A stretch of 64,000 nt of DNA, taken from the NCBI GenBank assembly GCA_011109175.1, contig RDEW01000051.1, positions 118,685 through 182,684 of the forward strand. The letters run 5' to 3'. Positions 4,057 to 61,790 of the stretch are shown here, in pieces (within the stretch, counting starts at the first letter, position 1; every line of letters starts with the position of its first letter). A program made the translations under genes and the position numbers. This DNA is from Dicyema japonicum (lineage: Eukaryota > Animalia > Dicyemida). The notes under the pieces were generated by a model. That model worked only from the letters and a program-made list of their open reading frames with translations. It was not told the DNA's origin and did no database searches.

Positions 4057-4312
4057 TTTATTTATTAGCCCCGGATACATTGAGAAAGAAGTTAAAGTAA
4101 ACAGCTAATTAAGTGTATCCAGTTTCCACTTCTACGAAAACAGAGTCCATCCGGAATCAACATAAAGGGTAGACTTCCATACTTGCAGTTGTGGAAGCCC
4201 CTCAAGTGGAGTGGGGGAGAGAAAATGATCCTTCTTCGTTCCGGCCTGGCAGAGGAGGAACAGACGAACAATCAGAAACTTCAACCAATTAGTCACGAAG
4301 CACCACGTGGCC
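4057..4312 (-). mobile_element. Family A (Ingi-derived RIME-like element), internally deleted copy
   Basis: Reverse complement matches the 6594-6928 copy in head (GGCCACGTGGTG..CTAATTGGTTG), body and 3' end; the first half of the pseudoknot is deleted. Confidence 0.85.
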
Positions 4313-4760: not shown

Positions 4761-4789
4761 TTGGTGGTTCAATTCCCACATCATTACAT

Positions 4790-4930
4790 ACGTCATGTGA
4801 TTCACCTGTCCAAGGAGACACCCACTGCCACAATACATAAAGGATCTTGATCTGCCCTACTCTACTTGAATGGTTTTCACAATTGGGAATATGGATGTAC
4901 GTGGTCCTTGGAAAGGATGCGTTTCATTTT
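4790..4930 (+). mobile_element. Family A degenerate 5' portion
   Basis: cgtcatgtgattcacctgtccaagg...ggatc aligns to the family A pseudoknot region. Confidence 0.65.
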
Positions 4931-6512: not shown

Positions 6513-6593
6513 TAAAATAATATTACTTTTTTTTGCAAACATAAATAAAACATTACAAATATGCCTTTATACGTTCAACCGACAATTAGCTAA

Positions 6594-6928
6594 TTTAGGA
6601 CTTTTGCCGCGTGGCGCCATATGGTGTTGCGTGGTTAATTGGTTTAATTTTTTTGCTTGCTTGTCTATTCCTCTTCTCTCTTCCTAATAGAGTGGCGTCA
6701 TGTGATCCACCTGTCTAGGTGACGCCCAGTGCCAGGCCGGCATGAAAAAAGATCATTTGCTCTTCCCCACTCCACTGGAGGGGTTTCCACAACTGCATGT
6801 AATGGACGTCTTACCCTTTATGCTGATTCCGGATGGACTCTGTTTCTGTAGAAGTGGAAACTGGATAATTAGTTGTTTACTTTAACTTCTTTCTCGGTGT
6901 ATCCGAGGTTAATAAATACGTAAATAAA
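6594..6928 (+). mobile_element. Family A full-length copy (335 bp) with 26-bp target-site duplication
   Basis: TATACGTTCAACCGACAATTAGCTAA at both 6568-6593 and 6929-6954; 5' part homologous to Ingi-like LINE 5' ends, 3' part to their 3' UTR. Confidence 0.92.
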
Positions 6929-7014
6929 TATACGTTCAACCGACAATTAGCTAAGGTTGGGCGTGTGGGGACTATACGAACTTTAAGATAATTAATATCT
7001 TTCAAACGACTGTC

Positions 7015-7210: not shown

Positions 7211-7399
7211 CGTATCTTTTTTTAAATAAATAATATGTCACGACGCGATCGAGCATTAGACGCTCTCTTCCAAGGGATGTCTGGGTAAACCTGGCTCGTC
7301 TTCCGTGTGAACACCAGTCTCTTCCAACGTACTCAAATTGGATGACGTTAAAGATGTCTGCTCATCTTGCAACCTCTTCGAGTTGATGGAGGACGGGGG

Positions 7400-7699: not shown

Positions 7700-7830
7700 A
7701 CTAGAGTGGTGTCATGTGATCCATTTGTCTTGGGTGGCTCCAAGTGTTGAGGTAACACGAAAGGATCATTTACTCTTCCTACTCTAATGAAGGGGTTTGT
7801 ATAACTATGGGGATTGGACGTCTTACTCCC
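7700..7830 (+). mobile_element. Family A partial copy
   Basis: ctagagtggtgtcatgtgatcc...gtgttgaggtaacacgaaaggatcatttac. Confidence 0.8.
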
Positions 7831-8289: not shown

Positions 8290-11220
8290 GGACTAGACTC
8301 TTCATCCCGGTACCCTTTTTTCTAAGTAATCCATCCTATGTCTATTTAATTCAGCGTCCTGATTCGAATATCCTCCGTGATCGGCCTGACAAGTTTGTTC
8401 TCTTCCTCTGTCAGGCCTTCATACAATTTCTTCCCGAGGGCTAGTTTTATTGCCGCCCGTCGTGTTTTCTCCAGTCGGGCGGAATCCTTTCTCTCGAGGG
8501 GGTGTAGAACTATCCCTCGCTTCCCTAGATAAGTCTGGGAAGAATCACATTCCGAAAGACAAAGAGCATGGAATCAACGTCCAGCTTCAGTCTTCTAGTA
8601 CAGAACAGTGCCTGCAAAGCCTTCTTCCTCGCCCTTCGACGTCCTTCATGTATGATCCTCTCCCATCGACTGAAATCCCCAGGTATTTCAATGATGAAAC
8701 TCTCGGTATTCAGAGAGTGTAGGGCTCTTCCTGATGTCTACCCGGCCTGCTTATCCTCAAGTAACTGGATTTTTCCGTCGAGAGTTTCATGCCTCTCAGA
8801 TCGCACCAACCCTGGACCTCGTCGATAAACGCTCCTAGTCGCCGCTCTGAGATGTATGCTTTCAGAGATGAATCCAGGATTAAAATGTCGTCCACGTAAA
8901 TCATTAGCTTGGTTCTGACGTTCTGCGAGACGGAAAATCTTCCATAAATATGTTAAATAGCAGGGCAAAGAATAGATCCCTGTGGCACTCCTCTTTTAAA
9001 TGATATTCCATCCGAATAACTTCCACCAACTACCACGTGGATATCCTCCCGTTAAATAGTCTTCAGCCATAAGAACATTTCTTTAGATATTTTATAACGA
9101 ACTAGCTGACAAAATAAAGCCTTGTGCCATACACTGTCGAATGCCTTTGATATGTCGAGACAAATAAGGCTCAACTGGCTTTTCTTCTCAAATGTATAAT
9201 TTCGTAGTTTAGTGAGTAAATACAATTTCCACATGATCTTCCCGGACGGAAACCAAATTGATAAGGTCGTAGAAAGTTACTCTCCTCTATATACCGATTC
9301 AATCTCCTGAATACAATACGTTCCATAATTTTTGATGTAGAACATATAAGGCTTATTGGCCTATAACTGAGGGATCCTTCCTTGCTTTTCCTGGTTTGAA
9401 GATCATCTTCACAATAGATCGTTTCCATAAAGGAGGAACGTGTCCGAGCCTGAAACTCGAGTCATAAATCTCTCGTAGAACAGACAATAGTTCATCAGAA
9501 CCTTCTTTGAACATAATCATGGAGATGCCATCAAATCCTGGAGCCTTGTTCTTGCATTCACGAATTGCTGTTCTAACTTCTGCCATTAAGACTTCTGTCA
9601 AACTACCCAGATTTTCCATAGAGTAATCCATGAAATTAGGCAACTCCTCAGAAAATTTCTGAATACTGAAGGAACTTTTTCCAATGGGATTGTCCTTCTA
9701 TTTTGATCGGCCAGCTCAATGTTTTTCGCTTTTAAACTCCCATTTGTTAGCCTCCTGTACATTCTCCAGAAACAAGGGTTTTTCCAATTAACTTTAGAGG
9801 CTGCATTTTCGGCGTTTACTCTCCAAGCTTCTTGTAACATTTTTTGGATCACATCAATTCTGTATTTCAAGATTTTCCTCAATACATCGTTTGTGCTTCG
9901 CCTTCAGAGTATTCCTCTCGCGAATAAGATCCCGTATTATAGGTGGGCAAGAATCTTTGTTCTTCAGAAAGCTCTTCGAGTAAACCTTCCTTCCATATAA
10001 TTGTAGATACATAGTGTTTGATAGTTCCAAGTTGAAAACGTCCAACTCATTAAGTGTAGAAAAAGAATTAGTCTTCAATAATAAGGTCTCAGACAAAAAA
10101 TGACGATAATGTACCCAGTCTATCGACGAGGTATCGTAGTATAGGAAAATATTTTCTGCAATGTTTAATTCTAGGTTTAGTTATTTCCTGAGATCACTTC
10201 CTATGTCCCAAAGCAACCTTGGTTTGTCCACATGATCCAGGAGCTGAGGAGACACTAGAGCCAATCCCAACATGTCAGCTCCGTTGTATGAGAAATGGTT
10301 AGGTTCTTGAGACGTCAAGACTTCAACTCCAATTTTGCTAGTCAGATCTGCAAGGAGTCGCCCGTCATTATTTTTGCAGCATCCGTAGCTCGTATTCTTA
10401 GCGTTCAAGTCTCCTACCAAAATCGACAACGGGTTTGTTTCGAAAAATTGGACAATTTTCGCAGTAGATCGGGCCAAGTCTTTAGAATATAGCCCTCCCA
10501 CGCTTATCCATCTTCCTCCACATTGAATGTCGACGGACACAAATTCCGACTCGTCGGCCATTACAATGTAATCATTCCGTGTTTGCAAACCGTTTCGAAA
10601 AAAGATTGAAGTTCCAGTTCCAGCCACTGCTCCATCTTTCCATGGAATGCCCACCGAGTTATATCCTTCCATATTATATTTTTTTCCTTGTTTGATTTTC
10701 GTTTCGTTGACTACCAAGACATCCACCTTGGCAATCCTCACAAGTAGCGCTAGTTCATCATGCCTTTTCACCAGGGAGCGGGCATTCACCAGCACTAATT
10801 TCAATTTACTTTTCATCGTTTTGGTTGGTGGCCTGCGCTCTCCACAGCCAGGTCCACCAGACTCCAAAAATCCACTTTCAGCATTTTGCATAAATTGTTC
10901 AGACGAGAGACAATTTCATTCAGCTCCCGAGATACCGACTCGGGGACTCCTGCCTTCCTCTGTTCATGTTTACGTTTGGCGCTCCGATCCACCATGAATG
11001 TGCGAACTATCGGTTCTCATAATCTCTTCTGTCTGTTTGACCATCTCGCAAACTTCTGACTGCCTATGCAAATTTTTCCTTTTAGCGCTCCTCTCCAAAG
11101 GCCAATCAAGAGTATGTGAAATATTGGTCCACTTCATTTCTTGAATTGGCTTGATTCCTTTTTTTCTAGACACTGTTTGTCTGGAGATTATTTTCTTCAA
11201 CTCAAGACTGCTGGTCAACT
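8290..11220 (-). mobile_element. APE-RT non-LTR retrotransposon (I/Jockey-group-like; clade not resolved) with ORF1-like remnant
   Basis: APE (LVNARSL, NETK, GDLNAK, GSD) at 10181-10891; RT motifs YRPISLICSTSKIMERI, QFGFRPGRS, LDISKAFDSVWH, GVPQGS, YVDD at 8700-9640; broken by single-base frameshifts. Confidence 0.88.
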
Positions 11221-12301: not shown

Positions 12302-12395
12302 TTTCTCATTTTGATTGCCAATATTCTCATTTTGATTGGCACTGTCCCACTTTTAATAACACCATTCTCATTTTGATTGGCGCTATTCTCATATT
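12302..12395. promoter_or_regulatory. Three to four direct repeats of TTCTCATTTTGATTG(G/C) (CCAAT-box-like on minus strand) in an AT-rich intergenic island
   Basis: Repeats at about 12304, 12325 and 12366 and a partial one at 12386; the reverse complement is (G)CCAATCAAAATGAGAA. Confidence 0.45.
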
Positions 12396-13274
12396 AATGG
12401 GAAATGGTATATATCATTATCCCCGGAGAGCCTTGACTCGGTGTCTTTACTTGAGTCCACATAAGCCTGTGATCTATGGAGAACTGCTCGGTCGTAATGT
12501 AACAGGTATCCTGCATTTTTAGACAAATTCGTGTTTCTAGAACGTACTTTCACTGTTTTATTACTCTGTACGCCCTATTTTAGATAGCCACGATCTTCTC
12601 GTCGTCTGTCAGGAAATGGGACCCGCGAGGCGCCATAACAGCACACTAACATTTTCTCTTTCAATCAGGAAATGGGGGAAAAGTGGGACAACTATCAGAT
12701 CAAATCACAAGTATTCTCTCAGTTGCAAAGAACCCGTAGTTATGCCGAACAGTAATCTATTTGTGTTTTCCTCGCCTCTTCTCTAGTCCTCAATGTGTAT
12801 TGTCCTCTTTTTCGTCTCTGTCAGTCCTCGAATTCTGCGTCTCACCAGAATAAACTTGACGGATCTCTGACGTGGGAATTTGAACTAATTACTTCCTTGG
12901 ATTCGAATCAATAAATTGATTACTCACACGCGAGAAAGCAAGTACATTTAGGAATCCACCGACAACGATCCCTCAACGCAGACATGGTCACTATTCGCCT
13001 TATTTACACGTGGTTCAAAACAAAAAATCCCCTCTACTACCTAGTGCTCAACCACGTGCACAACAAGTCATAAGTCCCAAAAGTCAGCATAAACTCGTGT
13101 GAAAACCAAGGATATCTTCACTGCCAAGTAACAAGCCCAGGTGGATTCACAACTTTGTACAGCACGTGGGTAACTATGAGAGTCCAAACACATCATTGAC
13201 AAGCCAACCTCAACCAACTAGCACGATTAAGGAAAACAGGTAAAGACTAGTAGTAACCCAAATATCAATGTTAA

Positions 13275-14074: not shown

Positions 14075-14190
14075 GGTGCCATGTGGCTATTTGATTGAGA
14101 TTTATCCTCTTCGTTCTAGTGGTGTCATCGGACCCACCTAACACAAGAGACGTCCAATGTCTGGTTTCTATTCAAAAAAATCCATCTCTT
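14075..14190 (+). mobile_element. Family A degenerate head and pseudoknot
   Basis: gccatgtggctatttgattgag...ctagtggtgtcatcggacccacc. Confidence 0.55.
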
Positions 14191-14276: not shown

Positions 14277-14590
14277 CGCCATGTGGTCTTTCGTGGCTAA
14301 TTGGTTGAATTTCTGTTGATTTTGTCTGTTCCTCCTCTTTCCCTTCTTACTAGAGTGCCGTCATGTGATTCACCTCTCAGGTGGCGGCCAGTGCCAGATT
14401 TGCAAAGAAAAAATATCATTTGCTCTCCCCCACTCCATTGGAGAAGTTTCCACACAGCAAGGAATGGACCTCATTTACCTTTTATGCTGGTTCTGTAGGG
14501 ACGTGACGTTGAAGGACTGTTTCTGTAACAGTGGAAACTGATACACTTAGCGGTAACTGTTAACTCTTTCTCGGTGTTTCCGGGGTAATA
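14277..14590 (+). mobile_element. Family A near full-length copy
   Basis: Head, pyrimidine tract, pseudoknot with compensatory P1 (GCCGTC/GGCGGC), body and 3' end ctttctcggtgtttccggggtaataaa. Confidence 0.88.
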
Positions 14591-16949: not shown

Positions 16950-19870
16950 TATTTTATTTATTTAACCCAAGAACACCAATAGTTAATTTAATTGTAGTAA
17001 ACTAATTAGTGATCCCGGCCGCCTCCATCAGGTCTTTCATCTTTTCCGGTGGACCTTCCGAGATCCAACACAGCTTCTCTGAGGACGGGAGGGTTTTGAA
17101 AGAAATGCAAGAGGGGTGATGTAAAGTCTTCTAGTAAGACCCAATCCATTAGAGCATTGTAGGAAGTTGGATTTTCGGCACAGAGCGGCAAATCCCTTCC
17201 CATTTTGTCCGATAAGGTCTTCCAGAGAGTGGGTGTGAGACTGACTGTTCTCACGAGCTTGCCGATAGTTGTAGCTGATAGGGACTGAATATCATTGGTT
17301 TTCTGTTTGTTCGTCCAGGATAGGTTGATTCCCTAAGACGCACAGGCGTAGCTGATAGATGGCTCAATGAATTGTTTATGTCGTAGTTTCAATGCTGGGA
17401 AAGGGGTTCTGATGCCACCAAAAATAGATTTGATCAAACCAAGCTTTCTTGAACAGGTTCCGGAGATATATTCGACATGAGGGGAGAAGGTCATGTGCGT
17501 GTCAAAGGCGACTCCTAAGATTTTCAATTTCTTCGTAAAAGGTATTTTAGTTTGGTTGATAAATAAATCAACGGTCATTCTTCCAAGACGTTTGTCTGAG
17601 GTAAATAGGGATGTGGAGGACTTCTCAGGAGATATATCAAGTCTGTTGGAGATTAACCAATTTTGAATCACGTGTAGTTGTTTTTGAACTCTTTCTGAGG
17701 CTTTTAGGAGATCCTGGTCACGGGATCCAATTAGAATGTCATCAGCATAGGAGAGGAGAAGATCGTCTTTATCAACTGATCGTGGCAAATCGGACATAAA
17801 AAGGTTGAATAAGGCGGGGGACAAAGGAGAGCCTTGCGGAACACCATTGGGAAGTAGTCTCGAAAGTGATTTGGTCCCATCCATACAAACCCGGGCCCTT
17901 CTCCCGCTGAGGAAATTCGAAAGCCAGAGTTTTAGATTGGGGTTAATGGAGAGTCCAAATAATTTCCTGGTTAAGATTTTCCTGGAGACAGAGTCAAAGG
18001 CTTTACGCAGATCCACAGAGCAGACGATGGTTTTGAGGTGACGAGGACTTGAGTTGAAGCCATCAAGGATAAATTGATTGAGAGAAGTAAGGTGGGTGGA
18101 CGTTGAATAGAACTTTCTGAAGCCACGTTGAGAGGAACTGAAGGGAAGGGACGGGAAATGAGACCAAGTACCAGTTTTTCCAATAATTTTGAAAATGAAC
18201 ATAATAGAGAAATTGATCGGTATGAAGGGGGATTGTTTTTGTCCTTGCTAGGTTTTGGTATTGGGGGTATGTGGGAAAGTTTCCAAATCGTAGGGATGGA
18301 ATCCATATTCAAAGAATAGTTGAAAATAAGGGAGATTACCCCAATAGTAACCAATCCAAGGTGTTTAAGAAGTATTGAAGGGATGCCATCTGGACCACAA
18401 GAGCGGGAGGGATTAATCATCTTCAAGCCTTCGAATACGTTTGAATGAGAAATAAAGGTGATCGGCGGGATTCTTTTAGGTCTCATCGAGAACAAAGAGG
18501 GTCCATCCATTTTCTTGAAGGTTTTGTGACTTATAGTTTATTTAAGCTGTGTTGGTCTGTCTTTTGTTTCGTGGTGGAGTTTTCTTTAGGGCCAAGTCTT
18601 TTTATTGCCTTCCAGACCATCTGGGTAGATTTCTGAAATGGGAGAGAGCAGATTTGCTTTTCCCACTTGTTTGCTTCAGCCCTTCTGATCCTTTTTGAAA
18701 TTTCATCATTGAGAGACTTTGTCTGGGATTTCTGTCCCGGGAGGGGAGGTACGTGTCTTTTCAAGCGGTTTCTTTCTCTGATTAGTGATTTGGTATTCTG
18801 ATCCAAAATTTCGTTGTAGTATTTGAACCTTCCACGAGGGATGAATCTACTACGAGCATCAAGAATTATTTTGTTCAAATGGTCGACGGCCTCATCAATA
18901 GAACGGAATATGTTCAAGTCAAAGCAAAGTAGAGCCTGGTTTTGAGTAGCCGTCCCAATTTGCTTTTTTGTAATTGAAGAAAGAAACAGTTGTTTTTGGA
19001 TGATAGAGAAATTTTTTGAATCGAATGATTATTGGATTATGATCGGAAGATAATCCGTAATGTACTGTCCATGAAATGTTGGGTCCAAGAGTTGATGAAC
19101 AGAAAGTGATGTCGGGGATGTAGATGAATCACCTTCCTTGAATGGAGTTCTCGTGTGCATAGTGGGGCTGTTGAGGATTGTCATGGAGGAGAGTTGTTTT
19201 ATTAAGGATAGTCCTCTTGAGTCAGTTGTTTGTGATTTCAACCAGGCAGGGTGCTTTGCATTAAAATCTCCACAAAGTATTAGGTTTTCTAGGTTGTTTA
19301 GTCTGGATAAGTCCAACAAGAATCCTTTCGAGCAAGATGACGGAGGAGGGACATATATGTTAGCAATTTTGAGAGTACTCGATCAGTTTGATATTGAAAT
19401 TCCGGAGATTTCCGTGGTCCCATCGTTAGTTAGCGACTTATGTTCAGCGGATATGTCAGAATAACGAAGGTTCTTTCTGATGATGGTAAGAAGGCCTCCA
19501 CCGAGGCGGTTCGGGCGATCTAGGCGGATGCAGTCGAAACCTGGAAAATGAGGAGTAGTCGCGACTGAGTCAACTTGCTTTCTTGGAGCAGGATCACGTC
19601 AATGTTTTGGTTGTTTGTGAAGGATCGTAATTCGAGAATTTTGCTCTTTATTCCATTGATGTTAATCTGCAGAATTGAAAGTTGGGGACCTGGGTTGAGC
19701 TCGATGTTGCCAAAGAGTAGTAGAAGGATCCCATTGAGAGTTGATGGGAGAAGAGTTGAAGGAAGCCGTCCGAAGGAACCAACTTCGGATGGGGGTGAGC
19801 AAATGGTCTTTTTCCTAGGTGCACCCTGAGCGGTTCCAGAAACGTTATGACTGGTAGACCACATGACGCC
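16950..19870 (-). mobile_element. Ingi-like LINE copy 1: 5' pseudoknot, 2A-like peptide, APE, RT, 3' UTR
   Basis: GILLLLFGNIELNPGP followed by ILQININGIKSK...LLQES, LCGDFNAKH; RT YRSISLL, VDLRKAFDSV, GVPQGSPLSP, SYADD; ends GGGATCACTAA...GGGTTAAATAAAT. Confidence 0.9.
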
Positions 19871-20126
19871 ACGTTTAATTTTAATTATGAATTGGAGTTT
19901 ATGATAATTAACCGAGAAATGAGGCCAAGATATCGAAGTGGGTTTAACTTTTTTTGGTTGCGTGTGAGTCCCTGTAGACAATCTGGTTCCGCAGCAGTAG
20001 CTAGATCCAAACCCGGAACCAATATGGAATTGTCATATCACTGAGCCATCCCGGCATTATTAAATTTTAAAGAATAAAATTATTAAAATTTCAATTAATT
20101 TATTATTAAATTAAAATTAAATTTAT

Positions 20127-20709: not shown

Positions 20710-20990
20710 AATTTATTAACCACGGATACACCGAGAAAGAAGGTAAAGTAAATAACTAATTAAGTGAATCCAGTTTCCACTTCTACAGAAACAGAGTCCA
20801 TCCGGAATCAACATAAAGGGTAAAAGACGTCCATACTTGCAGTTGTGGAAACCCATCCAGTGGAGTGGGGGAGAGCAAATGATCCTTTTACGTCTGGCAC
20901 TGGGTTCCACCTGGACAGTTGGATCACATGACGCCACTCTAATAGGAAGAGAGAGGAGGAACAGACGAACAAACAGAGCAATTACTCAAA
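20710..20990 (-). mobile_element. Family A copy
   Basis: High identity to 6660-6920 on the reverse strand. Confidence 0.9.
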
Positions 20991-27994: not shown

Positions 27995-29430
27995 TAAGTG
28001 GCCTTCGACTCTGTCTCAAGAAAATTCCTAGCCAGGAAATTGTTTGCCCTCCCCGTCAACCCCAATATAAAACTTTGGCTTGCTAACTTCATCAATGGAA
28101 GAAGAGCCCGGGTATACATGGATGGGACCAAATCAGTTTCAAGATTACTACCAATGGTGTCCCACAAGGTTCCCCTTTATTTCCCGCCTTATTTAACTCA
28201 TTCATTTCCAATTTACCACAACCTGATAATAAAGACGATTTCCTCCTATCATATACTGATGACCTATTAATCGGATCCCGCAATCAAGATCTTTTAAAGG
28301 CATCAGAAAGACTACAAGAATACCTTCACAAGATTCAAATTTGGCTAAATTATAACCGGCTTGATATATCTACTGAAAAATCTTCGTCCTTATTTACCTC
28401 AGACAAACGACTTGGACAAATACCTTTCACGTAGAAACTGAAAATCTTGGGGATCACCTTCGACACACACATGTCCTTTTCATCTCATATTGACGACATC
28501 TCCGGAAGCTGCTCAAAAAAGCTAGGGATAATCAAATTTATTTTCAGTGTCATTAAGACCCTGTTTCCAACATTGAAATTTTTGTACAAACAATTCATTG
28601 AGCCATCTGTCAGCAATGCCTGTACGTCATGGGGAATCAATCTGTCCTGGACGAACAAACAAAGAATCCGCGACATTCAGGCCTTGACATCCACTACTAT
28701 TAGTAATCTTGGGAAACTAGAAAAACTCCCTCCCTCGTTTCTTGAAGACCTTATCCGACAAAATGGAAAGGGATTTGCTTCACTGTGCAAGCAGTTCGAG
28801 TCCCAACAGTACACAGCCAGGACGTGTCTTATGAGAATGGTATACATCACCCCTCTATTCCTCGAATCATTCCGCCCATAGAAAAGTTTCGTTGGATCCC
28901 AGAAGGAAAGGATTTTATTTATTTAGAACCCCGGGATCACCGAGAAAGAAAGACAGAAAAAATGTCAGACAGTTAGGCAATCTCAGTTCCCGCAATCAAA
29001 TGAGTCATCCAGCGTCTGTGGTCTCCCATTGTTCCCACTACTATAGGAAAGAGCCTTCTCTCATTCCTGCAGAAGAAACTGATTTGGGAAGGGAACTTCT
29101 TTACCAATCGACCTTCTTTTGCCTTGGAAAAGGATAGACCAAGCGTGTTTCCTTCCTCCAACAGACCTGAAAGAATCCGGTTCCACGACAACAGGTCATA
29201 GCTTCCGTGAGTAGGGGATCAACCATTGATCCAGAGTGAGGGCCCATCATACATATAGTTTTCCGGTATATCGAATTGATTCTGTGGAGCGTAGTCACTG
29301 ATAACGCGAATCTCCAGAAGCATCCAAATTCAAAGGAGTCCTCCAGACACGTAGAAAATGAGAAATCTGATTGAGGCCTTCACTTACTTAATTTAGTAAT
29401 TAAATTAGCTATTGGTGTTATTGGGTGGTT
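27995..29430 (+). mobile_element. Ingi-like RT-to-3'UTR relic, close relative of the 16950-19870 copy
   Basis: AFDSVSRKFLARKLF..NPNIKLWLANF.NGRRARVYMDGTKS; LGITFDTHMSF; 3' UTR aattaaattagctattggtgtt shared with copy 1. Confidence 0.85.
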
Positions 29431-29436
29431 GTTGTA

Positions 29437-29570
29437 GCCACGTGGCGCCATGCGGTGCTGTGTGGCCAGTTGGCCAAAAATTTATTTTCCTTCCCTCGAT
29501 GGCGTCATTGGATCCAGCTTACTGAGGAGATGTAACGCCTGACCGCCATTAAAAGGATCAAACTATTCTT
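29437..29570 (+). mobile_element. Family A divergent 5' portion
   Basis: gccacgtggcgccatgcggtgctg head, then ggcgtcattggatcc...aaaaggatca. Confidence 0.65.
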
Positions 29571-29685
29571 TCCCCGGGGACAATGTCGTTACCTGTAGAC
29601 AAGCTCTGGAACTCTGGAACGAGTCAGGATCAGTTTATAGTCACCCTTGTCATTTGAATAATTAATTTTTTAAGATGGCCTTTGT

Positions 29686-29860
29686 GGAAACCCTTCCGTA
29701 GAGTGGGGGGAGCAAATGATCATTTTTCGTGCCACTCTGGCACTGGGCTCCACCTGAGACAGGTTGATCACATGAAGCCACTCTATAGAATAGGAGAGAG
29801 AAGTAGCAGATGAAACATACAGAAATCTTCAATCAAGTAGCCACATTGAACCACGTGGCT
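29686..29860 (-). mobile_element. Family A 5' half with the best-pairing HDV-like fold (29717-29779)
   Basis: Reverse strand GGCTTC-ATG-TGATCA-ACC-TGTCTCA-GGT-GGAGCC-CA-GTGCCA-GAG-TGGCA-CGAAAAA-TGATCA. Confidence 0.85.
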
Positions 29861-29869
29861 TTATGATAA

Positions 29870-31424: not shown

Positions 31425-32524
31425 TGAAGAATAGGGCGATTTTTATTTTGACTTTATAAATCGGAAATTTTGACCTAAAAAATTGACTTTAAAATTTCAA
31501 AATTTTGACTTAATGATAAATTTATCTACAAAAAAAATTTTTTAATATAAAAAACTAATCAAAATTTTTATTAAAATGCCGAATAATGTAATTCAAAACG
31601 TTTTCGGGGTTAAAATTTCGGTCTTTAGATAGAAATTTTTCCAAAAAAACTTATCTCAACAAATAGTGATGTGGAAGGACACTTTTTTCAGATAGTTGTA
31701 TACATATGTAGAAATATGTTGTTTTTCCACTTTTGTGATAGAAAGCACTTGATTAACAAATAATCTTAATTCCAGTACTTCCCGATTCTACATAAATCGT
31801 CCCCAAAATGCAATTTCTGAATTTGTTCAACAGCGTCTGAGAGATCTATCGCAAAATCCCTTAGAATTATCTGACAGATAATCAAAGAATTAGCCGCAGA
31901 AGACAATGGGCGACAAGATATTAAAATTATTTTCTTGGGATCAGAAATTCTTCCAATAAGTGTATTGACATACTTCTGTCCTCAGATATTAGTTTCATCA
32001 ATCAAGAAATTTTTTTCAAATCTATAATAAATGCAAATAAAACCTAAAAAATAGCTTGTTTCTGTCAAGCTGCTTCTGGCATAAATTTTCTACACTTTTT
32101 CGGCAAGCGTAAGTAGAAGGAAGATTATGTCCAATACTCTCATACAAGTCTCGTAAGCCTTTACTGTTCAACATTGCAAGTGAATACCGGATTCGACAAA
32201 AGCCTTAGTGACTTCATCGACCCATATGTCGGCAGATGGGACGAGAAAATCAGTTAGTTTTATTGACACCTGTAAAATAGTAATAAAAATAATAAACCTG
32301 CTATTTTGATAAGCTTCTTAGACGATCCATGTGATTCAATAAAAAATTGTTTTTTTGCAGTTACAAATGTCCCACATAAACTAAGAAATTTACCTGTCAT
32401 TCTTGATTGAAGGCAGCATCACAGTGAATGATGATTGATTCCACGATAGTATTTATTTAAAACTCGAAAAAATAAAAAAATCAAAATTAATAAAAATTTT
32501 GACTTTATTGACTTAAAAAATTAG

Positions 32525-32775
32525 CTGCTTCGACCGTAGAAAACTCAAAAATCAAGAAATATTCTTGCCTCGGGGACCGGTACTGATTACTCATGTTGCG
32601 GTCGAGTCATCGGGAGCCGTTGGTCCAATGGCGGCTGAGTTCTTGCGCGAACTTGAAGGAATGCTTGCCAGAAAGAATAGGGTTCAACGAGGTGGGTTAT
32701 GGCTGAGACAAAAGATTGGAATGGCCATACTCCGAGGGAACTCGTTTGCGATCCACGCAGCCGGCTTCCAAAACT
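32525..32775 (+). mobile_element. CRE-like RLE 3' fragment
   Basis: VAVESSGAVGPMAAEFLREL...LWLRQKIGMAILRGNSFAIH; near-identical to 44445-44656 and 47600-47860. Confidence 0.85.
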
Positions 32776-33397
32776 TGAGGATTGAAACAAATCCAATGAA
32801 ATACTCCAAATTGCTAGAAAATCTCAGAATCCATTTCAGACCAGCTTGTGAAGTAGGACTGTCTTCTTCAAGTCGGAAAAGATTTTACTGGAATTCAAGG
32901 AAAACTTAAGGAAAAGAATGCTCACTTAAGGTTTTTAGCCGGGGGATTCAAGTTTTTTGTTCTTCATCCGGTCTACTATAGTTAGTGGACCCAAAGAAAG
33001 ATGATTCAAGCAAGAAAGTCCCATCTCAGTGTTGGAAGGGTAGCATGGCGCTTGATCCACAGCCACTGCCAAGCAAGCACTATGATATTTGCTTGGTAAA
33101 GAAGGTCTGTCCGCCACAGTTGTCTGCTTTAGGCAGTTGCGTCTCTTCTACTTTGAAGGGACGTGAGTAAATAAATCCGAAATATCTAACAAAAATAATC
33201 CAGTCAGCCTCAGGAAAAGCAGAAGTCCAAGAAGAGAAAAAATACGTGACCTTAGGAGGACAGTTCGTTTTCAATCCCATCCTAGTCGAGCCTATTCCAT
33301 GCAATCGTAAGGGAGGATGGTTCCCAACCACGAGACCAAATTACTAGCCAATAACACTCTATGAGATTAATAAATCATTTCAATAAAAAAGTTGAAA

Positions 33398-34959: not shown

Positions 34960-36660
34960 ATTTTATTTAACCCAAGACCACCAGGAAAGATAGGTCAAAA
35001 CTAACTAATTGGGTGATCTCAGCTTCCAGCAACATCCGGACTCTTTTCAATTGGTCTTCTGATGATCCAACCCCACTCCGGAAGCGTCTTCTCTTGCTTC
35101 TGCAAAGGAATTCGATCGGCGTGCACTTTTTTGTTGCCGACCGAAATTCCTCTGCATGGGTTTCCCAGTTCCTTGCAGAAACGTAGGAAACCCTGGCCAA
35201 TTTTCAACGTTGCCTCATCAAAAACGAGGTCGCCAATGGGATGTCCGTGCGGTGCATAATTCTCCGCCTGAGGGAGTTCGAACGGTCCACTCTCGAAAGA
35301 GGAATCGCAAACCTCCAGGCGGAGCAGGCATATTCAATGGTCGGTATGATTACTTGTTGATAGACCTTGCTGATGCAGTCGGCCGGGGGGAAAGGGCTTT
35401 TTTATCATCGGATTCAGAATGTTCCATTTCCGAAAACCCTAAACGAGCACCTCCTCCACGTGACTCGAGAACGTCAACAGAGAGTCGAAAACTACACCAA
35501 GGATCTTCTGGGTCCGCGTAGAAGGGATGGGAGTGTTTCCGATGGATATCTCAAGCCCACTTTTAAACCTTCTGTCCGTAGTGAGTAATGTGAACTGAGA
35601 CTTGGATGTTATACACATAACGTATTTGCAGATAGCCAGTCACAAATTCGGTTTAGGTGTGTCTGAACAGTTGCTACAGCCATGGAAGGAGATTTATTTT
35701 TTGCAGCGAATATTAGGTCGTCCGCATAGGACAAAAACATAGTGTCCTGGTCATTGGTAGTAGGTAGGTCATGTAGAAATAGGTTGAAAAGGAGAGGAGA
35801 TAAAGGGAGCCTTGCGGGACTCCATTGGGAGTAGTCTTGATTTTGAAGTGGTTTTGTCAATATGGACCCTTCCGCGTCGTCCAGTTAAGAAATTTTCCAG
35901 CCATAGCTTGATGTTTGGGTGTAAGTTCGAGTTAAAAATCTTTTGCGTTAGGAGTTTCCTCGGAACAGAGTCAAAGGCCTTCTGTATGTCGATGGATACT
36001 AAGCCCGTCCTTAAGTGTGTATTCATGTTGAAGCCGTCAGTAATAAACTGGGAGATAGAACCCAAATGAGTCGTTGTAGAACGGTCTGCCCTAAAACCAT
36101 GTTGAATCTCTGGTAGATGTAGAACAGGAGAGATGCGCATTAACACAAGCTTTTCCAGTACTTTTGATAAAACACAAGTTATTGAGATGGAACGGTAAGA
36201 AGAGGGAACGTCTTTTGGTTTTCTGGGCTTTAGGATTGGCGTAATCAGGGAGTTTTTCCATATATTAGGTAGCGCATGGTAGTTGATAGAGTCGTTGTAC
36301 AGTCTTGATAGTATGGCCCGTGCCTGAGGTCCAAGATGTTTAAGGTGAATAGTGCAAATACCGTTGGGACTACAACACGAATGGGACGTAGAAATTTAAT
36401 AGCTCTTTCAACATCATCGGGGGTGAAGAAAGTGGACTATGGTCTTTTTGTGGCCGGCGCCGTTTAACAAGTGTAGAACGAGAAAAATTTTTATGGCTGA
36501 TCGATACGTAATACTTCATAATCTTGTTTGCGAGTTTGCGTGCGGGTTCCGAAGCGTTGCGGGTAACAGCCTCAGCTCCGCGGTCCTCCTCATTGATAAG
36601 GCTATTGATCCTTCTTAGTGATTTCCAAAATATGGCACAAGAGTCTTTGTGACATGCACA
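34960..36660 (-). mobile_element. Ingi-like RT relic, immediately 3' of LINE copy 2
   Basis: QHGFRADRSTTTHL, IDIQKAFDSVP, FLSYADD; 3' end GAGATCACCC...ggtcttgggttaaataaa at about 34965-35020. Confidence 0.85.
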
Positions 36661-36666
36661 CAAATT

Positions 36667-39503
36667 ATTATTATTATTACCCCCAGGATCACTGGGTCAA
36701 AGAGAAAGAAATAAAAGTTCTCATCTAACTAAGTGATCCCAGACCGACAAAGGTGAGGACGAGTCCGGCGGGTCGAGAATCCTGAACAGCTCTTCTCATA
36801 GGACATGGCATCGGCTCACAATTTCTGTATGATTGTAGATAATTCGATAGTATTTGGAATAGAGGGCAGCTCGGTAGAACAGCCTCCTTTAATAGTTTCG
36901 TTGTATTTCAATTAAAAATTTTCAATAGGTTGGATGTTGTGATCTGGTCCAATTAACCTCATTGCAGTCTCCTCGATTGCAGATAACTTCAATGTGGAAG
37001 ATCGTGACATTTGCATTGCCCATGAAGGACTTGCATACGTCATCGTTGGTCGGATGAATTGTTTGTATCGTGGCAAGGATCCCAGTTTGATCTCTAAATA
37101 TTTTTGAGAGCACTTTTAAAATTCTTAATTTTTTCAAAGCAGAAGTTACTCTTTTCAACATGTCGGATAAAGGTGAGTCCCTGATCAAAGGTTACTCCCA
37201 GAATCTTCGGTGTTTTGTTAATAGAGATAGCCTCGTTCTTCATAAAGATTTTTGGTTCGATACAGAGCTGTCTTTTGTAAGTGGTAAACAGCGTGACAGA
37301 GGACTTTGTTGCTGATGTGTCGAGTCTCCGCTTCGAGAGCCAAAGTTCCAGCTTGTCGAGCATTTGTTGAGCGGACTGAGTCGCTGATTGAATGCTTCTG
37401 TTCTTGGAAGCAAGAATGATATCGTCGGCATAGGAGAGGATTAGGCAGTTTTCATTACAGGTTTGTGGCATGTCGTTTATGTAGAGATTGAAGAGTTGGG
37501 TGATAGTGGGAGCCTTGAGGGACTCCATTTGGAAAATAACGAGATCTTGATTTGATGTTGTTGCAGAGTACTTGTGCTCGTCTTCCATTTAAGAAGTTTC
37601 CAAGCCAAAGTTTCAGGTTCGGATGGATGTTGGTTTCAAATATTTTCTTTGTTAGAGTTTCCTAGGGACTGAGTCGAACGCTTTTGTGATGTCCACGGAT
37701 ATAAGTACTGTCCTCTGATGGGGTTTGGGGGAGTTAAATCCTTCCGCAATGAATTGTGTGAGGGTTGTAAGGTGTGTTGTGGTCGAATGGTTGTCCCGGA
37801 ATCCGTGCTGGGTCGGAGGTATTGAGATTGAGTCTTGTATTTTTTCCAAAACAAGCCTTTCAAGGATCCTTGAGACCGGACTTAGAATAGATATTGGGCG
37901 ATAGGAAGATGGTTCATCTATTGGTTTGTTGGGTTTTCGGATAGGTCTGATTAGAGACTTCTTCCATATTTCAGGGATTGTATTTGTGTTAATGGATAGG
38001 TTGAATATATAGGCTAATAGTTCCAGGGCTCGATGGCCTAGGTGCTTCAGTTCACATGTGGTTATGTTGTCTGGTCCTTTGGCCTCTGAGTTGTTGGCCT
38101 TAGATATGGCTCTGCGAACATCCTGACTAGTAAATAGGATCCAGTCATCGGAGCGTTTCGGTTCAATCTTTTTCAGGAATACTTGGTGTTCTTTTGAAAA
38201 CTTCCTGTAGGATATAGATGTGTAATATTTTATCAGAGTGTCTGGTTTTATGTAGACTTCGACTTTTCTCTCTGGGGAGGTCTTTTGATGTTTTTGATCC
38301 ACTTCCACACTCTTGCATTGGGGGTTTTTGTAGAGAGCTTTCGATAGTCTCGTCCATCTATTTGCATTTTCTGTCTTTATGTTGTTGTCGATCTCTCTGT
38401 TCAATTCTCGTATTTTCCTGATGTTCTCTTCTGTTGGCGATTTTACCATCTTTATTTTCGTTCTCGATCAGATGTTTCGTCGTTGTGTTAAAACGTTTTG
38501 ATGACGTTGGTTGTCTCCCCATAGGAATGTACTTCTTTTTCGCATCGTTTATAATGGAGTTGAACCATTTCACTAATTGTTCGACGGAGGGAAAAGTGGG
38601 GAAATTTAATAGTCCAATACAATTATCGACGTATTCCTTGAATCCTTTCCAATTCGCAAGGCTGTAGTTAGTTATTGTTGGGCATTGTCCTTTTATCCGT
38701 GACCTTGTTTTGACCTCCAAAAATATTGGGTTGTGGTCACTACTGGTGTCATACTTCACTGACCAGTCAATAAGTGGGGCCAAGGACGGTGATGACAATG
38801 AGATGTCGATAGAAGAAGGTTTATCATTACGTCGAGTAGGTGTTCTTGTATGAGATGCAGGATCGTTGAGTATACATAGGCTGTGGAGGTCCTCAATTAT
38901 CATCTTCCCTCTTTTGTCGTAGGTTTGTCCTGTCAGCCACAGTGGGTGCTTCGCATTGAAGTCACCACAGATAATCACATCCTTTAGTGACGCGAGAGGA
39001 GTGAGTCTGGGGCACTGGACGAGCAGGAACTCAGTGGTGGGAGATATGCGTTGACAATTGTTATTGATAGTCTTGGGAATCGTATTTTGGTAACCAAAAG
39101 TTCGAGATTTCCATATCCTTTAAGCATAGTGTAAGCACTGTTGGTTATGTCCTCAAACGGAATGCCGTTGGATAACTGTGAGAAGACCCCCACCAAGTTT
39201 GCCAATTCTGTCACGGCGAATTACTGTGAATCCCGGAAATACTGGTGTTGAATTCTTTGGAGAAAGTTTAGATTCTTGAATTAGCAACAGATCAATGTGA
39301 TTTTCTTTCACAAATGTCCGAAGTTCGAGTATTTTGTTCTTGATTCCATTTATGTTCAGTTGGACTATTCTGGCTGGTCCAGGGTTTGCCTCAACGTCCG
39401 CAGCGGCGCAGGCCTTCCTTATTGGTCCACCCGTGAAGATAGGGGAAAGTGTGGTTCTTTTTTTTCAAATGCCACCACGTCGTCGGCGAGCCACATGACA
39501 TTT
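36667..39503 (-). mobile_element. Ingi-like LINE copy 2: 5' pseudoknot, 2A motif DVEANPGP, APE, RT, 3' hairpin and (TAA)n tail
   Basis: DVEANPGP (39375-39398), then IVQLNINGIKNKILELR...LIQESK, ICGDFNAKH, SDHNP, YRPISILS, QHGFR, VDITKAFDSVP, LSYADD; tail at 36667-36680. Confidence 0.92.
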
Positions 39504-39649
39504 CCAAACAACAACTCGTCAACAACAAATAGAAAGATTACTAAAGAATCTTACTCGACCACGCCGTAGTTATACATCGAGTTTATTCAATTTTTAAAAT
39601 TTGTGTATATTATAAATTAAATAAATATTTTAAAAAGTATCACTTGTGG

Positions 39650-39923: not shown

Positions 39924-41879
39924 TAAATTTTGGAATTTCTTTAAATGGCTTATCGTTGTTTTAAGAGAAAGACCTTATCTCAATAGAATCAGCGGCAATC
40001 CGCGTTTCTTCATATTTCCTGCGACTTCGGCTAGGTATTGCTCCCGCTCGTACGCGATTGGCTGTGGGTCCGATTTTAGCACCACTACCCACGTGGTCAA
40101 AAATTTCCCGCTACTCAAGTCCTTGTATTCCGCCTATCTAAGGAAACCCTCAGTGCCTGGACGGCATACTAAATGATCTCACTCTTCCTTACTTTACTGG
40201 GGGTTCCCACAATGGCGAGTATGGATGTGATACATGTGTGTCTCACTGTGGAACTAGGATCACTTGGTTGAGGACTCTTTTTCTTTTAACCTGGTGATCC
40301 TTAAAGAATAAATAGATCTAGAAGAGAACTCCAGAGCTATCCAATATATGGAGTAAGTCGTGATCCATTGAGTCAAAGGGTTTTTGCCATCAAGCAACGC
40401 TGAAGTAGGGCACATTGAATAAGCAAGGGTCATCTGTTGGATGTCAACCACCCCCATCTTCGCTTAGTACTCCTATCGGGATCTCATATACTTCCTGTAG
40501 GCTCAAGATCCATGACTCGTTTATGTAAGATGAACTGTGCACTTCTCGCAAGGGGTCAACCTTAGAGAACAAAAATTTGTTTGAGTTCCAACTACAGCAG
40601 ACTGGAGGTCCTTAATTCTCGTTAGCTGAATTTTCGCTGAATTTTTCCCCCCAAAAACGCAAATGTGGCTGACAGTTGGCTCAATAGGGAGCCTAATAAG
40701 AGTAGATGTGAGAAATGGCAAACTCAAGGCGCCCACTAACATAACCTTGTCATGTTATGCTATATATTTGAACTGATTTTTAAATATTCAGATTGTATTA
40801 TTATTATTTTACTAATGCGGATAATAAATCCAATAAATAAGGTTTAAATAATTACTTTTTGTAAAAATTAATAATTCCAGCAAAATTTAGTTCATTTGAC
40901 CATTTATTACACATGCGCTTCGTCCATTCATCTATGCCACCCAAGTTACCCAGAAAATGGCACTCAAGGATACAGACTTCTGGGTAGGACTCCTCACCAA
41001 TTCTTCTGGAATCTCTAATTTATAAGAACTGGGGTTGTGTCCTTGTACCTATGAGCATCCAATTGAGCCCCTTATATGTGTTGTGAGGGTTCGAAAGAGA
41101 AGTTGCATCGGGGTCACGTGATTAATTAGTAGTCTTTGAAATTTTCATTTCTTTATAATTGGGGTGGTGTCATCTCATAAACCGCTCAAGACCAGGACAT
41201 TTTCTCTCCCTAACTTCATTGGATCATTCCTGGGAGGGGAGCTCATAACCGCTCTGGATTACTATGTGGGTTTGGACTTCCAAAGAGCCCTTTCAGTAAT
41301 ACAGGGGTACGGATTTCGCATGGAGCCAACAGGGAAGGCCAAAATTGGGGTACGAATAGTAATGGTTTCAAAGTCAGCCAAATCTGTAACCTTGGATATC
41401 CTCATTTAAACAATCAGAGATCAGTTACCTTAGTAAATGAGATGGTGGAGCGTCTCTAATGTCCACATCACTGTATGAATGCGAATGTCCTCGTCTTCAT
41501 TACGAAACGACAAACTCTGAAAAATCATAAACTTAACTTATCAACTAAAAGCGTCGGATACACTAAGTCATGTTCAAATCGCATCCGGCCCAACTTATGA
41601 AAGAACTTAGCAGGATTATCCGTCAAACTCTCACTTATGGACAGTGTGAACCCCAATTCATGATCGTCTAATTGGAATTTTATTCCCCAAAAGACCGCAT
41701 TTTCCCAAAAATCACGTATTTCACAAGAAAAATACAAAACATAAAATTATATTAATTATACACACATGACCCACATTTAAAGATTTACCCCCAAGAGATT
41801 CTAATATCCCCCCCAAGAACAAAATTCAGCAAAAACTCAAATTGTTAATAATCGAATTATTTAAAAAATACAAGTCCAC

Positions 41880-43890: not shown

Positions 43891-45735
43891 CAGTATAACC
43901 TCAATTTGGGGCATCCAAAAAATTGCCCCAAAAACAGAGGTTTCCCCAAAATGGAGGTCCGATATTTTCTTCATTTTTATAACGACTTTAATTGTTTTAA
44001 CATTTTCCATTAATTTTATTAATAACTAACGTATTTTTTTAAACAGAAAAAATAATTTTTATTCTATTACACAAAAATAATCTGTTATTTTGTTTCCTGT
44101 TGCAGATTTCTTCACATGTATGCTTAATATTTTTCTGAAATTGTGATAGTCTTGTGTCGCACCGGGAAACAAACAGTGAATATTCTCCTCAAGGTTATTC
44201 ATTGCTGTTATTGTGTCCAAGTGTGAACAGTTGCATTCAGTTTGGTCATATAATTACTCATCATCACTTTCTTCTTCATTTTCAGTAACCACATCTGCAA
44301 TTATGGTGTCCAATTTTTTTCTCATTATTTATTGAATTAGGAATCAGTTGCCGACAGTTATTAGTTGTTGTTTCAGGATTTAAATTTTGCCATGTTTTCC
44401 CAACAATTATTATGACATGACCAAGATTTTTTTAAATTAAGCATGGCCGAATCATCGGGAGCCGTTGGTCCAATGACGGCTGAGTTCTTGCGAGAACTCG
44501 GAGGAATGCTTGCCAAAAACAAAAGGGAAGGGTTATGGCTTAGACAAAAGATTGGATTGGCCATACTCCGAGGTAACTCGTTTGCAATCCACGCAGCAGG
44601 ATTCCTCAACTGACATTTGTTTAATAGTTAAAAAAATAAATTAATATTAGTAAAAAAAATTAAGCATTTGTAACTAACGTTTTCAAAAAAAATCCATTAA
44701 AGCGTTGAGATAATTAGACTTAAGGATTTAGCACCCATGTCTAACGGGTGAATTAATGAGGTTTCATTTTTTTGGAGAAAAAACAATTCAATGCGTGAAA
44801 GATGGATATTCCTGTGACAACCTGCGCTATCAAACAACAAAACAGTTTTTCACTTTTGTTTAATCATTTGTAATGGTGAGCCAAGTAATAAATATTTCTG
44901 ATGTCTTCCAAGAATTTTTGGATGATGAGTAGAAAACTCCACGTTCTTCAGGGTTAAAGTTTTTCATACAATTTGGAGATTTAAATTTCCCCACTAATAA
45001 TGGATTCAATTTTTCTCCACAAGCACTGATTGAGAAAAGAATCGTGACCTTTTCCTTGCTTCTTTTAAGCCCGAATAGTCTTCACTCGAGTTACAAATGA
45101 TTTTTACTTGTCTTCAATGACAGCTGATGTCTTTTCTTAAATTTTTCCAACCAGCCATTGGGCCTTTTGAACGGCGAACAATTCAACATCCTTGCTACTT
45201 TAGAGGCAATATTTTTTAAAAGAGGACCAGACATAGAAAAATTCCTCCCTTGTTTTTGTAAACAATTATATCCAATTTTTGAGATAAAGTATTGGGAGAG
45301 CATTGAATATTTCTAGGAAAATCTGTTTGAACAGCCCAAGTATTAAAAAATGAGATAATTTTTTATACGTGATACAGCGCCTAAAAACTTAAATTACTAA
45401 ACAACCTTTACTAATTTTGTATTTATTTACAATATCTCGTTCAGTAAGATGTTCATTTTCACTTATTTCCTTACCAATTTTAATCCTTAACTCAAGACTA
45501 AGCTTACGAGCCATAACCACAAGAAAGCAAAAATTACACGAAACTTCAAAATAAAATTTTATATAATTAATTTTAATATTAATAGCAAATATTTATATAA
45601 ATTAAAAATTCAGTGTCCCACTTAGAGGTTCCGATAATTTCCAAATTTGGAAATTACCGCATAAAAATTATGCCATTTTCAAACTACCCCAAAAACAGAG
45701 GTTTCCCCAATCTCAAATAAGGTTAAGTCGGCTGT
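43891..45735 (-). mobile_element. pogo/Tigger transposase relic
   Basis: MSGPLLKNIASKVARMLNCSPFKRPNGWLEKFKKRH is the Tigger CENP-B HTH; TA-CAGTATAACCTC left end; right end degenerate. Confidence 0.8.
44445..44656 (+). mobile_element. 5'-truncated CRE-like insertion with A-rich tail and 11-bp TSD
   Basis: AAATTAAGCAT at 44434-44444 and 44657-44667; ends cctcaactgacatttgtttaatagttaaaaaa. Confidence 0.85.
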
Positions 45736-47300: not shown

Positions 47301-47935
47301 TTGAGCTTCCTCAACTGACATTTGTTTAATTGTTAAAAAAGTTTTTTTAAAAAAAAAAAAAAAGTGCAGAAGAAGCGCCGGAAGGGGACCACGTCATGCT
47401 GCTCTGAATGATGTGATCGTCAGAGCTCTGAAGGCTTCAGGCTTCCCAGCACAGCTTGAACCAGTGGGTCTTGATCGAGGAGATGGAAGAGACCTGACGG
47501 GATGACCCTTTTCCCCTTCACGTCTGGAAGATCTTTGGTCTGGGACGCAACTTGCATAGACACGTTCTCAAACACGAACATTTTTAAATCTGTTCAGACA
47601 CCTGGAGCAGCTTCGACTGCGGAAAACCTAAAAATCAAGAAATATTCTTGCCTCGGGGATTCGCTACCGATTATCCTGTTGCGACCGAATCATCGGGAGC
47701 CGTTGGTCCAATGACGGCTGAATTCTTGCAAGAACTCGGAGGATTGCTTGCCAGAAAGAAAAGGATCAACGAGAAGGTTATGGCTAAGACAAAAGATTGG
47801 AATAGCCATACTCCGAGGGAACTCGTTCGCAATCCACGCAGCAGGCTTCCTCAACTGACATTTGTTTAATTGTTAAAAAAATTTTTTAATTAAAAAAAGA
47901 AAAAAAATAAATAAATAAAATAAAAAATAAAAAAA
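47300..47935 (+). mobile_element. Tandem CRE-like 3' ends (short end plus longer RLE fragment)
   Basis: cttcctcaactgacatttgtttaattgttaaaaaa at about 47309 and 47847; [35 protein letters not shown]. Confidence 0.85.
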
Positions 47936-56700: not shown

Positions 56701-57049
56701 AGAACAAGAGAGTTTCCTCTTAGACTACAGTCTCTAACTCATCTTTGGCGGTATTGCTCTTCCCGTTGTTGATGTGAATCACTCAGCTGAAGACACTTTT
56801 CTCGTTAACAAAGTGAGAGAGACCATTTTCTGGATGCTGACCAGTCACTGAGAGTCATCTGAGACAGATGGTCCACGTGGAAGTTGTCGAATTATAATTG
56901 AGAATTAAAGTGTCAGTAAAAAGAGAATCCCCGTCCACCTTACTTACAAACACACACGTCATTCCCCCTCTTTAGATTGAACCGAGAGATTCTTAAACCA
57001 AAAAATGTCAAAGTCCCACTGTCGAATCCGGAGACTTAAATCACAGAAA

Positions 57050-57210
57050 GACAAATAGTTCCAAGCACACACGAGTCCATCCAAAGAAATAGTTGTTAAA
57101 ACCCCAAAAGAAATGATGCAATGTAAAAAAGGGAGAGCAAATGATCCTTTACAAAGCGATCTCGCCATTGATCGCCTCCTGAGAAAGGTGGTTCATGACG
57201 CCATGGTAGA
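57050..57210 (-). mobile_element. Family A divergent copy
   Basis: ggcgtcatgaaccacctttctcaggaggcg...aaaggatcatttgctc on the reverse strand. Confidence 0.65.
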
Positions 57211-61669: not shown

Positions 61670-61790
61670 CTGTTTTTTCTCTCCCCACACAATCGGTGCA
61701 GCGTCATGTGATTCACCTGTCCCAGAAGATTGGCAAGATAGGACCAAAATGATCACCTGCGTTCCTCCAATCATCTGTTACTCCTTGGAG
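61670..61790 (+). mobile_element. Family A degenerate 5' portion
   Basis: Pyrimidine tract, then gcgtcatgtgattcacctgtcc...aaaatgatca. Confidence 0.6.

Follow-up and report, generated by a model that had tools for sequence, protein, structure and literature searches.

A hepatitis-delta-ribozyme-type RNA fold predicted in SINE-like elements and at the 5' ends of 2A-peptide LINEs

The module and the elements that carry it

The window analyzed here is a stretch of DNA of 64 kb, and the motif under study occupies 63 nt of its minus strand. Read directly from 29779 to 29717, it runs GGCTTC ATG TGATCA ACC TGTCTCA GGT GGAGCC CA GTGCCA GAG TGGCAC GAAAAA TGATCA, and its segments pair in the order P1-P2-P3-P3'-P1'-P4-P4'-P2', which makes a nested double pseudoknot (pairs counted with pseudoknot notation). 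The preliminary description had given the same helix order for 29717-29779. This copy, referred to as copy I, has the following parts.

29692..29867, minus: repeated part of the SINE-like element with copy I, aligned with copies A, E, G, B and D
29717..29779, minus: 63-nt module copy I, the best covariance-model match (88.5 bits, E 1.2e-20), 21/21 pairs formed
29779-29774 with 29751-29746, minus: P1, GGCTTC/GGAGCC, 6 bp
29773-29771, minus: J1/2, AUG
29770-29765 with 29722-29717, minus: P2, TGATCA/TGATCA, 6 bp
29764-29762 with 29754-29752, minus: P3, ACC/GGT, 3 bp
29761-29755, minus: L3, UGUCUCA, 7 nt
29745-29744, minus: J1/4, CA
29743-29738 with 29734-29729, minus: P4, GTGCCA/TGGCAC, 6 bp
29729, minus: candidate catalytic C at the P4/J4-2 junction
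29728-29723, minus: J4/2, GAAAAA

A covariance model was built from 10 window copies, using the nested helices P2, P3 and P4 only and leaving P1 out. Searching with the filters off, we recovered 13 window copies and two more in the Octopus sinensis locus L001, with E values from 1e-20 to 3e-4; by BLAST and MAFFT these form a dispersed repeat family. SINE-type copies number 11 in the 64-kb window versus none in the 21 kb of L001. Copy I is the only one among the copies compared that combines 21/21 pairs with a C after P4. The other window copies are listed below.

4221..4275, minus: copy B, a remnant that has lost the core (P1 through P1') and keeps P4, J4/2 CGAAG and P2'
4785..4855, plus: copy C, decayed, directly behind a tRNA-like box-B head GGTGGTTCAATTCCCAC
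6595..6931, plus: SINE-like copy A, module at 6694-6756; J4/2 begins with U, not C
7708..7769, plus: copy D, one P1 mismatch, P4 GTGTT/AACAC, J4/2 CGAAAG, box-B-like head upstream
14117..14188, plus: decayed copy preceded by a SINE head and lying a short way before copy E
14357..14420, plus: copy E, P1 GCCGTC/GGCGGC, in which pair 2 is C-G in place of G-C; J4/2 without C
19799..19874, minus: 5'-end module of LINE F (a decayed element), P1 GGCGTC at 19870-19865
20877..20936, minus: copy G, two P1 mismatches, P4 deleted
39447..39506, minus: 5'-end module of LINE M (a decayed element), P1 AATGTC/GGCATT, without P4 and without C in J4/2
40113..40184, plus: copy J, decayed
56815..56888, minus: copy with P3 ATC/GAT and P2 GGACCA/TGGTCT, P1 broken
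57137..57206, minus: copy L, partly decayed
61696..61760, plus: copy with P3' and P1' lost

The helices that the preliminary description had quoted from these copies could all be traced: P1 GGCGTC/GACGCC at 6694, GCCGTC/GGCGGC at 14357 and AATGTC/GGCATT at 39502; P2 TGGTCT/AGACCA at 19870 and TGTGGCTC/GAACCACA at 39502, the latter with one C.A mismatch; P4 GTGTT/AACAC at copy 7708; and the J4/2 variants CGAAAG at copy 7708, CGAAG at 4230 and TGAA in the 6694 copy. Its estimate of about a dozen copies agrees with the 13 window matches at E<1e-3 plus one core-deleted remnant.

Around the module, approximately 85 nt upstream of P1 are common to copies A, B, E, G, I and D, and consist of a short head (GCCAYGTGG...GTGGCTAATTGGTTGA) followed by a pyrimidine-rich linker ending in TAGAGT. 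Box-B-like motifs were seen upstream of copies C and D only, and ARAGORN returned no tRNA. The element of copy I comprises this head (from about 29859), the linker, the module and the start of a downstream hairpin, its 3' part having diverged or been replaced. The SINE body matches the 5' end of LINE F from 2 nt before P1, and the SINE tail shares with the 3' end of LINE M a terminus of the form ...CTTTCTC...CCNGGGG..TAATAA. The SINE-like element is hence made up of a head, a LINE 5' module and a LINE 3' tail, the arrangement expected under the bipartite model. An exact direct repeat of 24 nt, TACGTTCAACCGACAATTAGCTAA, stands on either side of SINE A (6570-6593 and 6932-6955). The 3' flank of SINE A (6930-7223) belongs to a further repeat family with members at 55470-55765 and 57639-57379 (minus), so SINE A seems to have been inserted close to where that repeat begins.

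Contigs of four public runs were placed on the window at a likeness of at least 80%, and their summed depth over 29692..29867 was 3,800-103,000, versus about 235-280 in the unique flanks (29644-29691 and from 29868). Another very abundant repeat lies beside copy I, at 29564-29643 and 29500-29531, with a summed depth of up to about 455,000 versus about 260 in unique flank. The window further holds three copies of a short repeat with A/T-rich tails that is unrelated to the module (32523-32823, 44436-44659 and 47606-47904), and short tandem arrays at 2451-2576 and 12303-12406 (three repeats of a 42-nt unit, and four to five of a unit of about 21 nt).

LINEs F (about 16.6-19.87 kb) and M (about 36.7-39.5 kb), both on the minus strand and both decayed, encode APE and RT domains. 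In LINE F the AUG of J1/2 (19864-19862) opens an ORF, MWSTS...LLLLFGNIELNPGP, which is followed by the APE domain; the ORF opened by the J1/2 AUG runs through the 2A peptide GNIELNPGP into APE and RT. The features outside the modules are these.

19696-19685, minus: 2A peptide NPGP of LINE F, in frame with the J1/2 start codon and the APE domain
39398-39375, minus: 2A peptide DVEANPGP of LINE M
36640..36790, minus: 3' end of LINE M, homologous to the last approximately 70 nt of the SINE tails and ending in a (TAA)n run
29692-29716 (minus) and 6757-6790: post-module hairpin of the SINE, CCCCACTCC ACT GGAGGGG
19798-19760, minus: post-module hairpin of LINE F, TCCGAAG...CTTCGGA
L001 3087-3040, minus: post-module hairpin of the L001 LINE, CCAACCAAC...GGTTTGGTTGG

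The hairpin that directly follows the module seems to be conserved with differing sequences, and the 5' domain may thus include a fifth helix.

A library search identified protein P0001 (Octopus sinensis LOC115229065), with 44% identity to the N-terminus of LINE F (residues 1-100). Its locus, L001, holds two 2A-LINE 5' ends, each with a module, and the proposed link between the module and LINE 5' ends proved sound in all four 2A-LINE 5' ends available (two in the window and two in L001). Upstream of P1 the four aligned LINE flanks have scattered identity only, which fits a 5' terminus at P1; a TSD search of LINEs F and M gave only an unusable 8-nt AT-rich match. Taken together, the alignments suggest that the module forms the 5' terminus of 2A-peptide APE/RT LINEs. 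Searches for more related DNA returned short unrelated contigs only (protein search with the RT query) or six chance matches, all without the module (metagenome scan with a 19-base anchor from downstream of the module), and L002, a GC-rich metagenome 2A-LINE whose ORF starts with MW, presented no clear HDV-type fold by eye. Two further LINE sequences lie in the window: an APE-domain ORF at 10181-10891 (minus), without a 2A motif or an upstream module, which looks like a different LINE family, and an RT-region fragment at 28001-28788 (plus), an inverted copy of part of LINE F (17178-18001) with 75-88% similarity.

The catalytic core in LINE and SINE copies

One of the LINE 5' ends of L001 (3158..3088, minus) reads GATCGTC AUG TGGTTC ACC TTCTCGT GGA GACGATT GG A TGCTGAT TTCAC ATCAGCA ACAAACA GAACCA. 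Its P1 (3158-3152/3129-3123, GATCGTC/GACGATT) has 7 bp and opens with G.U; its L3, UUCUCGU, has a G at the G25 place and is, we presume, very close to the L3 of CPEB3; its J1/4 is GG, so that U.G and C-G pairs are possible in P1.1; and it has a 7-bp P4 (TGCTGAT/ATCAGCA) and a C within J4/2. Downstream there are 618 stop-free codons, the 2A peptide GDVEQNPGP and then a stretch that can be aligned to the APE region of the other LINEs. This related LINE carries a near-canonical HDV core; Rfam left the copy undetected. Just upstream of its P1 we observed a 13-nt direct repeat, TTCACCTTCTCGT (L001 3173-3161 and 3145-3133, minus), which is a second copy of the segment running from the end of P2 across P3 and L3 and may be a 5'-junction integration artefact.

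Both the G1.U37 wobble and the equivalent of G25 play an important part in catalysis by HDV. In the SINE version (copy I and consensus), (i) P1 has 6 bp and a first pair G-C, and there is no 7-bp P1 with a G.U wobble, (ii) L3, UGUCUCA, has no G in its 3' half and hence no G25.U20-type reverse wobble, and (iii) J1/4 is CA and the canonical CC/GG P1.1 is absent. An earlier caveat, that the canonical CC and the G25 equivalent are missing from L3, was therefore well placed. Pairing of the L3 UG with the J1/4 CA is possible in 6 of the 11 SINE-type copies, just two states being seen among the copies. Copies I, D, G and B have a C at the P4/J4/2 junction; copies A (where it is U), E, L, F and M do not. 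The SINE consensus retains both this C and an A-rich J4/2. The Rfam models gave no match to the module at the gathering threshold or at E<=10, a result that is uninformative since the same models also miss the near-canonical LINE copy.

The position of the module within the element bears on cleavage as well. The motif at 29717-29779 does not stand at the 5' end of an element: it sits inside a SINE-like element, 85-100 nt from the start, and the copies retain the head that cleavage would remove. In the window, P1 is not the starting point of any SINE-type copy. Contig pieces whose match ends shortly before P1 (place 29785) share a consensus (agreement 0.67-0.69), which in reverse complement, TTTGTCTGTTCCTCCTC..., is the SINE linker and not random flank. 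The 24-nt repeat on either side of SINE A likewise has the head of that element inside it. Genomic copies thus continue upstream of P1 into SINE sequence, which indicates that cleavage at P1 had not taken place in the RNAs that gave rise to them.

Altogether, these features suggest that the SINE module probably cuts poorly or not at all; self-cleavage of copy I appears unlikely, and we would not expect measurable self-cleavage from the SINE module in general. The reading that we favor, with a probability of roughly 0.58, is that copy I is an old dead copy of a SINE-like retroposon whose body is the 5' RNA module of its partner LINE, retained for its fold as a non-cleaving or weakly cleaving structural mimic. 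In the LINE, the module starts 6-7 nt before the start codon, holds the AUG in J1/2 and folds as an HDV-type nested double pseudoknot. Self-cleavage is most likely in the related LINE with the canonical core, where it would separate the RNA of the element from sequence co-transcribed upstream and give the AUG a very short leader, in the manner of L1Tc and R2. The module was copied from the 5' end of the 2A-LINE into SINEs, between a head and a LINE 3' tail, and its core was there altered in three ways, namely a 6-bp P1 with a G-C start, an L3 (UGUCUCA) without the G25 equivalent, and CA for GG in J1/4. The fold was probably retained since the LINE machinery may use it for RNA recognition or 5'-end handling in retrotransposition, whereas catalysis may have been lost or weakened because cleavage would behead the SINE.

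The strongest competitor to this reading is that the SINE module is itself an active ribozyme with a variant core, in which a 6-bp P1, a G-C pair at the cut site, a UG/CA P1.1 and C29729 as general acid would bring about cleavage 5' of P1. All helices of copy I are intact and P4 is followed by C-GAAAAA; a 2-bp P1.1 could be preserved, as UC/GG of the canonical LINE is replaced by UG/CA in the SINE; the U at the C position of copy A stands in a CpG context and may reflect later decay; and none of the best-supported contig differences listed falls at 29729. In addition, the core of L1TcRz is non-canonical, its first nucleotide being other than G and its P1.1 having 1 bp, and yet this ribozyme is active (PMC3185411). 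Some activity of the SINE module is thus still conceivable, given the C after P4, the A-rich J4/2, the possible 2-bp P1.1 and the L1TcRz precedent. On the other hand, this view has to accommodate the missing wobble and G25 equivalent, the short P1, the head that the copies keep upstream of a module placed 85-100 nt inside the element, and the inactivity in vitro of some well-folded SIDER modules (PMC4035085). On balance we regard it as unlikely. Its wider form, an active HDV-type ribozyme with a new core (6-bp P1, G-C at the cleavage site, UG/CA P1.1, no G25) that is present in very many copies and would cut SINE-containing host transcripts, as SIDER2 does in Leishmania, seems somewhat more doubtful still.

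Covariation and competing explanations of the fold

Topology alone is no evidence of a fold here, since a loose descriptor of it with G.U pairs allowed matched about 450 start positions on the plus strand alone; the evidence is comparative. In a MAFFT alignment of 10 copies, 78% of the cells were paired, versus 29-58% when the 3' partners were slid, and double-sided change was found in 11 pairs, a number reached by 0 of 500 shuffles. In the 15-copy covariance-model alignment, 76% of the cells were paired and double-sided change was found in 13 pairs (26 cells). Over both alignments the slid controls gave 25-59% paired cells and 0-1 of 500 shuffles reached the double-sided count, although such counts overstate the significance because there are only 15 sequences, many of them related.

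The helices contributed unequally. In the 15-copy alignment, P1, which the model left unconstrained, was 78% paired, and four of its six pairs changed on both sides; the same was true of four of the six pairs that P2 forms with the distal strand, where the copies alternate between TGATCC/GGATCA, TGATCA/TGATCA, TGGTTC/GAACCA, TGGTCT/AGACCA and GGACCA/TGGTCT, much of this covariation being a contrast of LINE versus SINE. P3 was the weakest helix, its changes being mostly one-sided apart from one ATC/GAT. The compensatory changes asserted in the preliminary description are therefore borne out for P1, P2 and P4. At pair 4 of P1 (29776, 29749) most genomic copies have G.C versus U.A in copy I, as judged from marginal frequencies and not from linked haplotypes. 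Coding constraint was considered as a cause of the conservation and rejected, given that the SINE copies read ATG TGA and the frame is closed at once. The maintenance of four helices by compensatory substitutions in the SINE lineage implies that the RNA fold itself has been under selection, and on these comparative grounds we conclude that the 63-base motif forms a genuine RNA double pseudoknot, which is of the hepatitis-delta-ribozyme type and has been maintained by selection.

Three other explanations concern the fold rather than its activity. A long imperfect hairpin, formed by P1 extended through A7-U28, U8.G27 and UGA/UCA, could stand beside the P4 hairpin without any pseudoknot, the distal GATCA being merely conserved. 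This is exactly the structure that nested-only MFE folding returns for copies I, A and E (-23.7, -21.4 and -18.0 kcal/mol, with z-scores of -2.8, -2.5 and -2.2), and its extra pairs are compatible with most copies. Yet those pairs hardly covary, whereas the distal pairing of P2 shows the double-sided changes described above, and the extension is impossible in the canonical LINE copy. We consider this account improbable; the extended hairpin may be an alternative conformer that competes with the fold under selection.

The segment could alternatively act as DNA, for instance as an internal promoter like Pr77 of L1Tc, the RNA pairings being a by-product. The same 77 nt of L1Tc serve as promoter and ribozyme (PMC3383444), and the most conserved stretch here, GTCATGTGATC, holds an E-box-like CATGTG. 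A DNA motif, however, does not predict compensatory double changes in three helices, and the proposal is slightly less probable than the hairpin, even though a DNA-level role may coexist with the RNA role. Finally, the pairing could be only a legacy of a LINE ribozyme that once functioned, left without selection in SINEs and with compensation arising by chance. This would suit a small sample of related and mostly visibly decayed copies, but it is the least probable of all, as the double-sided changes exceed those in the shuffles and slid controls and copy I departs from most genomic copies at both positions of one P1 pair.

Relation to known systems and meaning

Several components of this picture are established: HDV-like ribozymes at LINE 5' ends, the combination of ribozyme and 2A peptide in L1Tc, the sharing of a 5' signature by non-autonomous elements, and the use of Vingi and RTE 5' ends as SINE bodies. 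The closest parallel is L1TcRz/Pr77 of Trypanosoma cruzi L1Tc (PMC3185411, PMC3383444), where, as apparently here, an HDV-type fold lies in the first approximately 70 nt of an APE/RT LINE with an ORF starting with 2A. Short non-autonomous elements (NARTc, RIME and SIDER) share the L1Tc module (PMC3185411, PMC3383444, PMC4035085), as the SINEs described here share that of the LINE. Both systems also have a non-canonical core, and some copies of L1Tc derivatives fold adequately yet are inactive (PMC4035085). The trypanosomatid elements have the module at the very 5' end, with the exception of SIDER2 signature II, whereas in our SINE it follows a head of 85-100 nt; unlike for L1Tc, the host is an animal and the start codon lies in J1/2.

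HDV-like ribozymes have been described at the 5' ends of R2, RTE, R4 and LOA/Baggins LINEs and in CPEB3 (Ruminski et al. 2011 and Eickbush 2010, as cited in PMC5786205; PMC3774820). They have the same helix order, and those of LINEs lie at the 5' terminus, close to the translation start, as appears to be so in the LINEs studied here. In contrast to ribozymes of the R2/RTE/CPEB3 type, the SINE version is without the cleavage-site G.U, the CC/GG P1.1 and the G25 equivalent, and its P1 has 6 bp.

The 5' ends of Vingi and RTE form SINE bodies, and a ribozyme located there would truncate the SINE (Kojima 2018, PMC5786205). SINE2-1_ACar and SINE2-1_AMi from the same study likewise combine a head, a LINE 5' end and a LINE 3' tail, the architecture of the bipartite non-autonomous LINE model; that work was sequence-based, describes no RNA fold or covariation in the captured 5' part, and concerns a different host. 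Our literature search, of limited coverage, found no report of such a fold in cephalopod LINEs or SINEs.

Against this background, what would be new is that the SINE has captured the ribozyme fold itself as its body, and that compensatory changes have preserved this fold even as its catalytic signature was altered. This offers a testable reason for the conservation of some SINE bodies, namely that the partner LINE may use their RNA fold. The passage from the canonical LINE to the variant SINE would provide a natural series for asking which parts of the HDV core serve cleavage and which serve other roles, and the L1Tc-type design of ribozyme, start codon and 2A peptide would be extended from trypanosomes to an animal.
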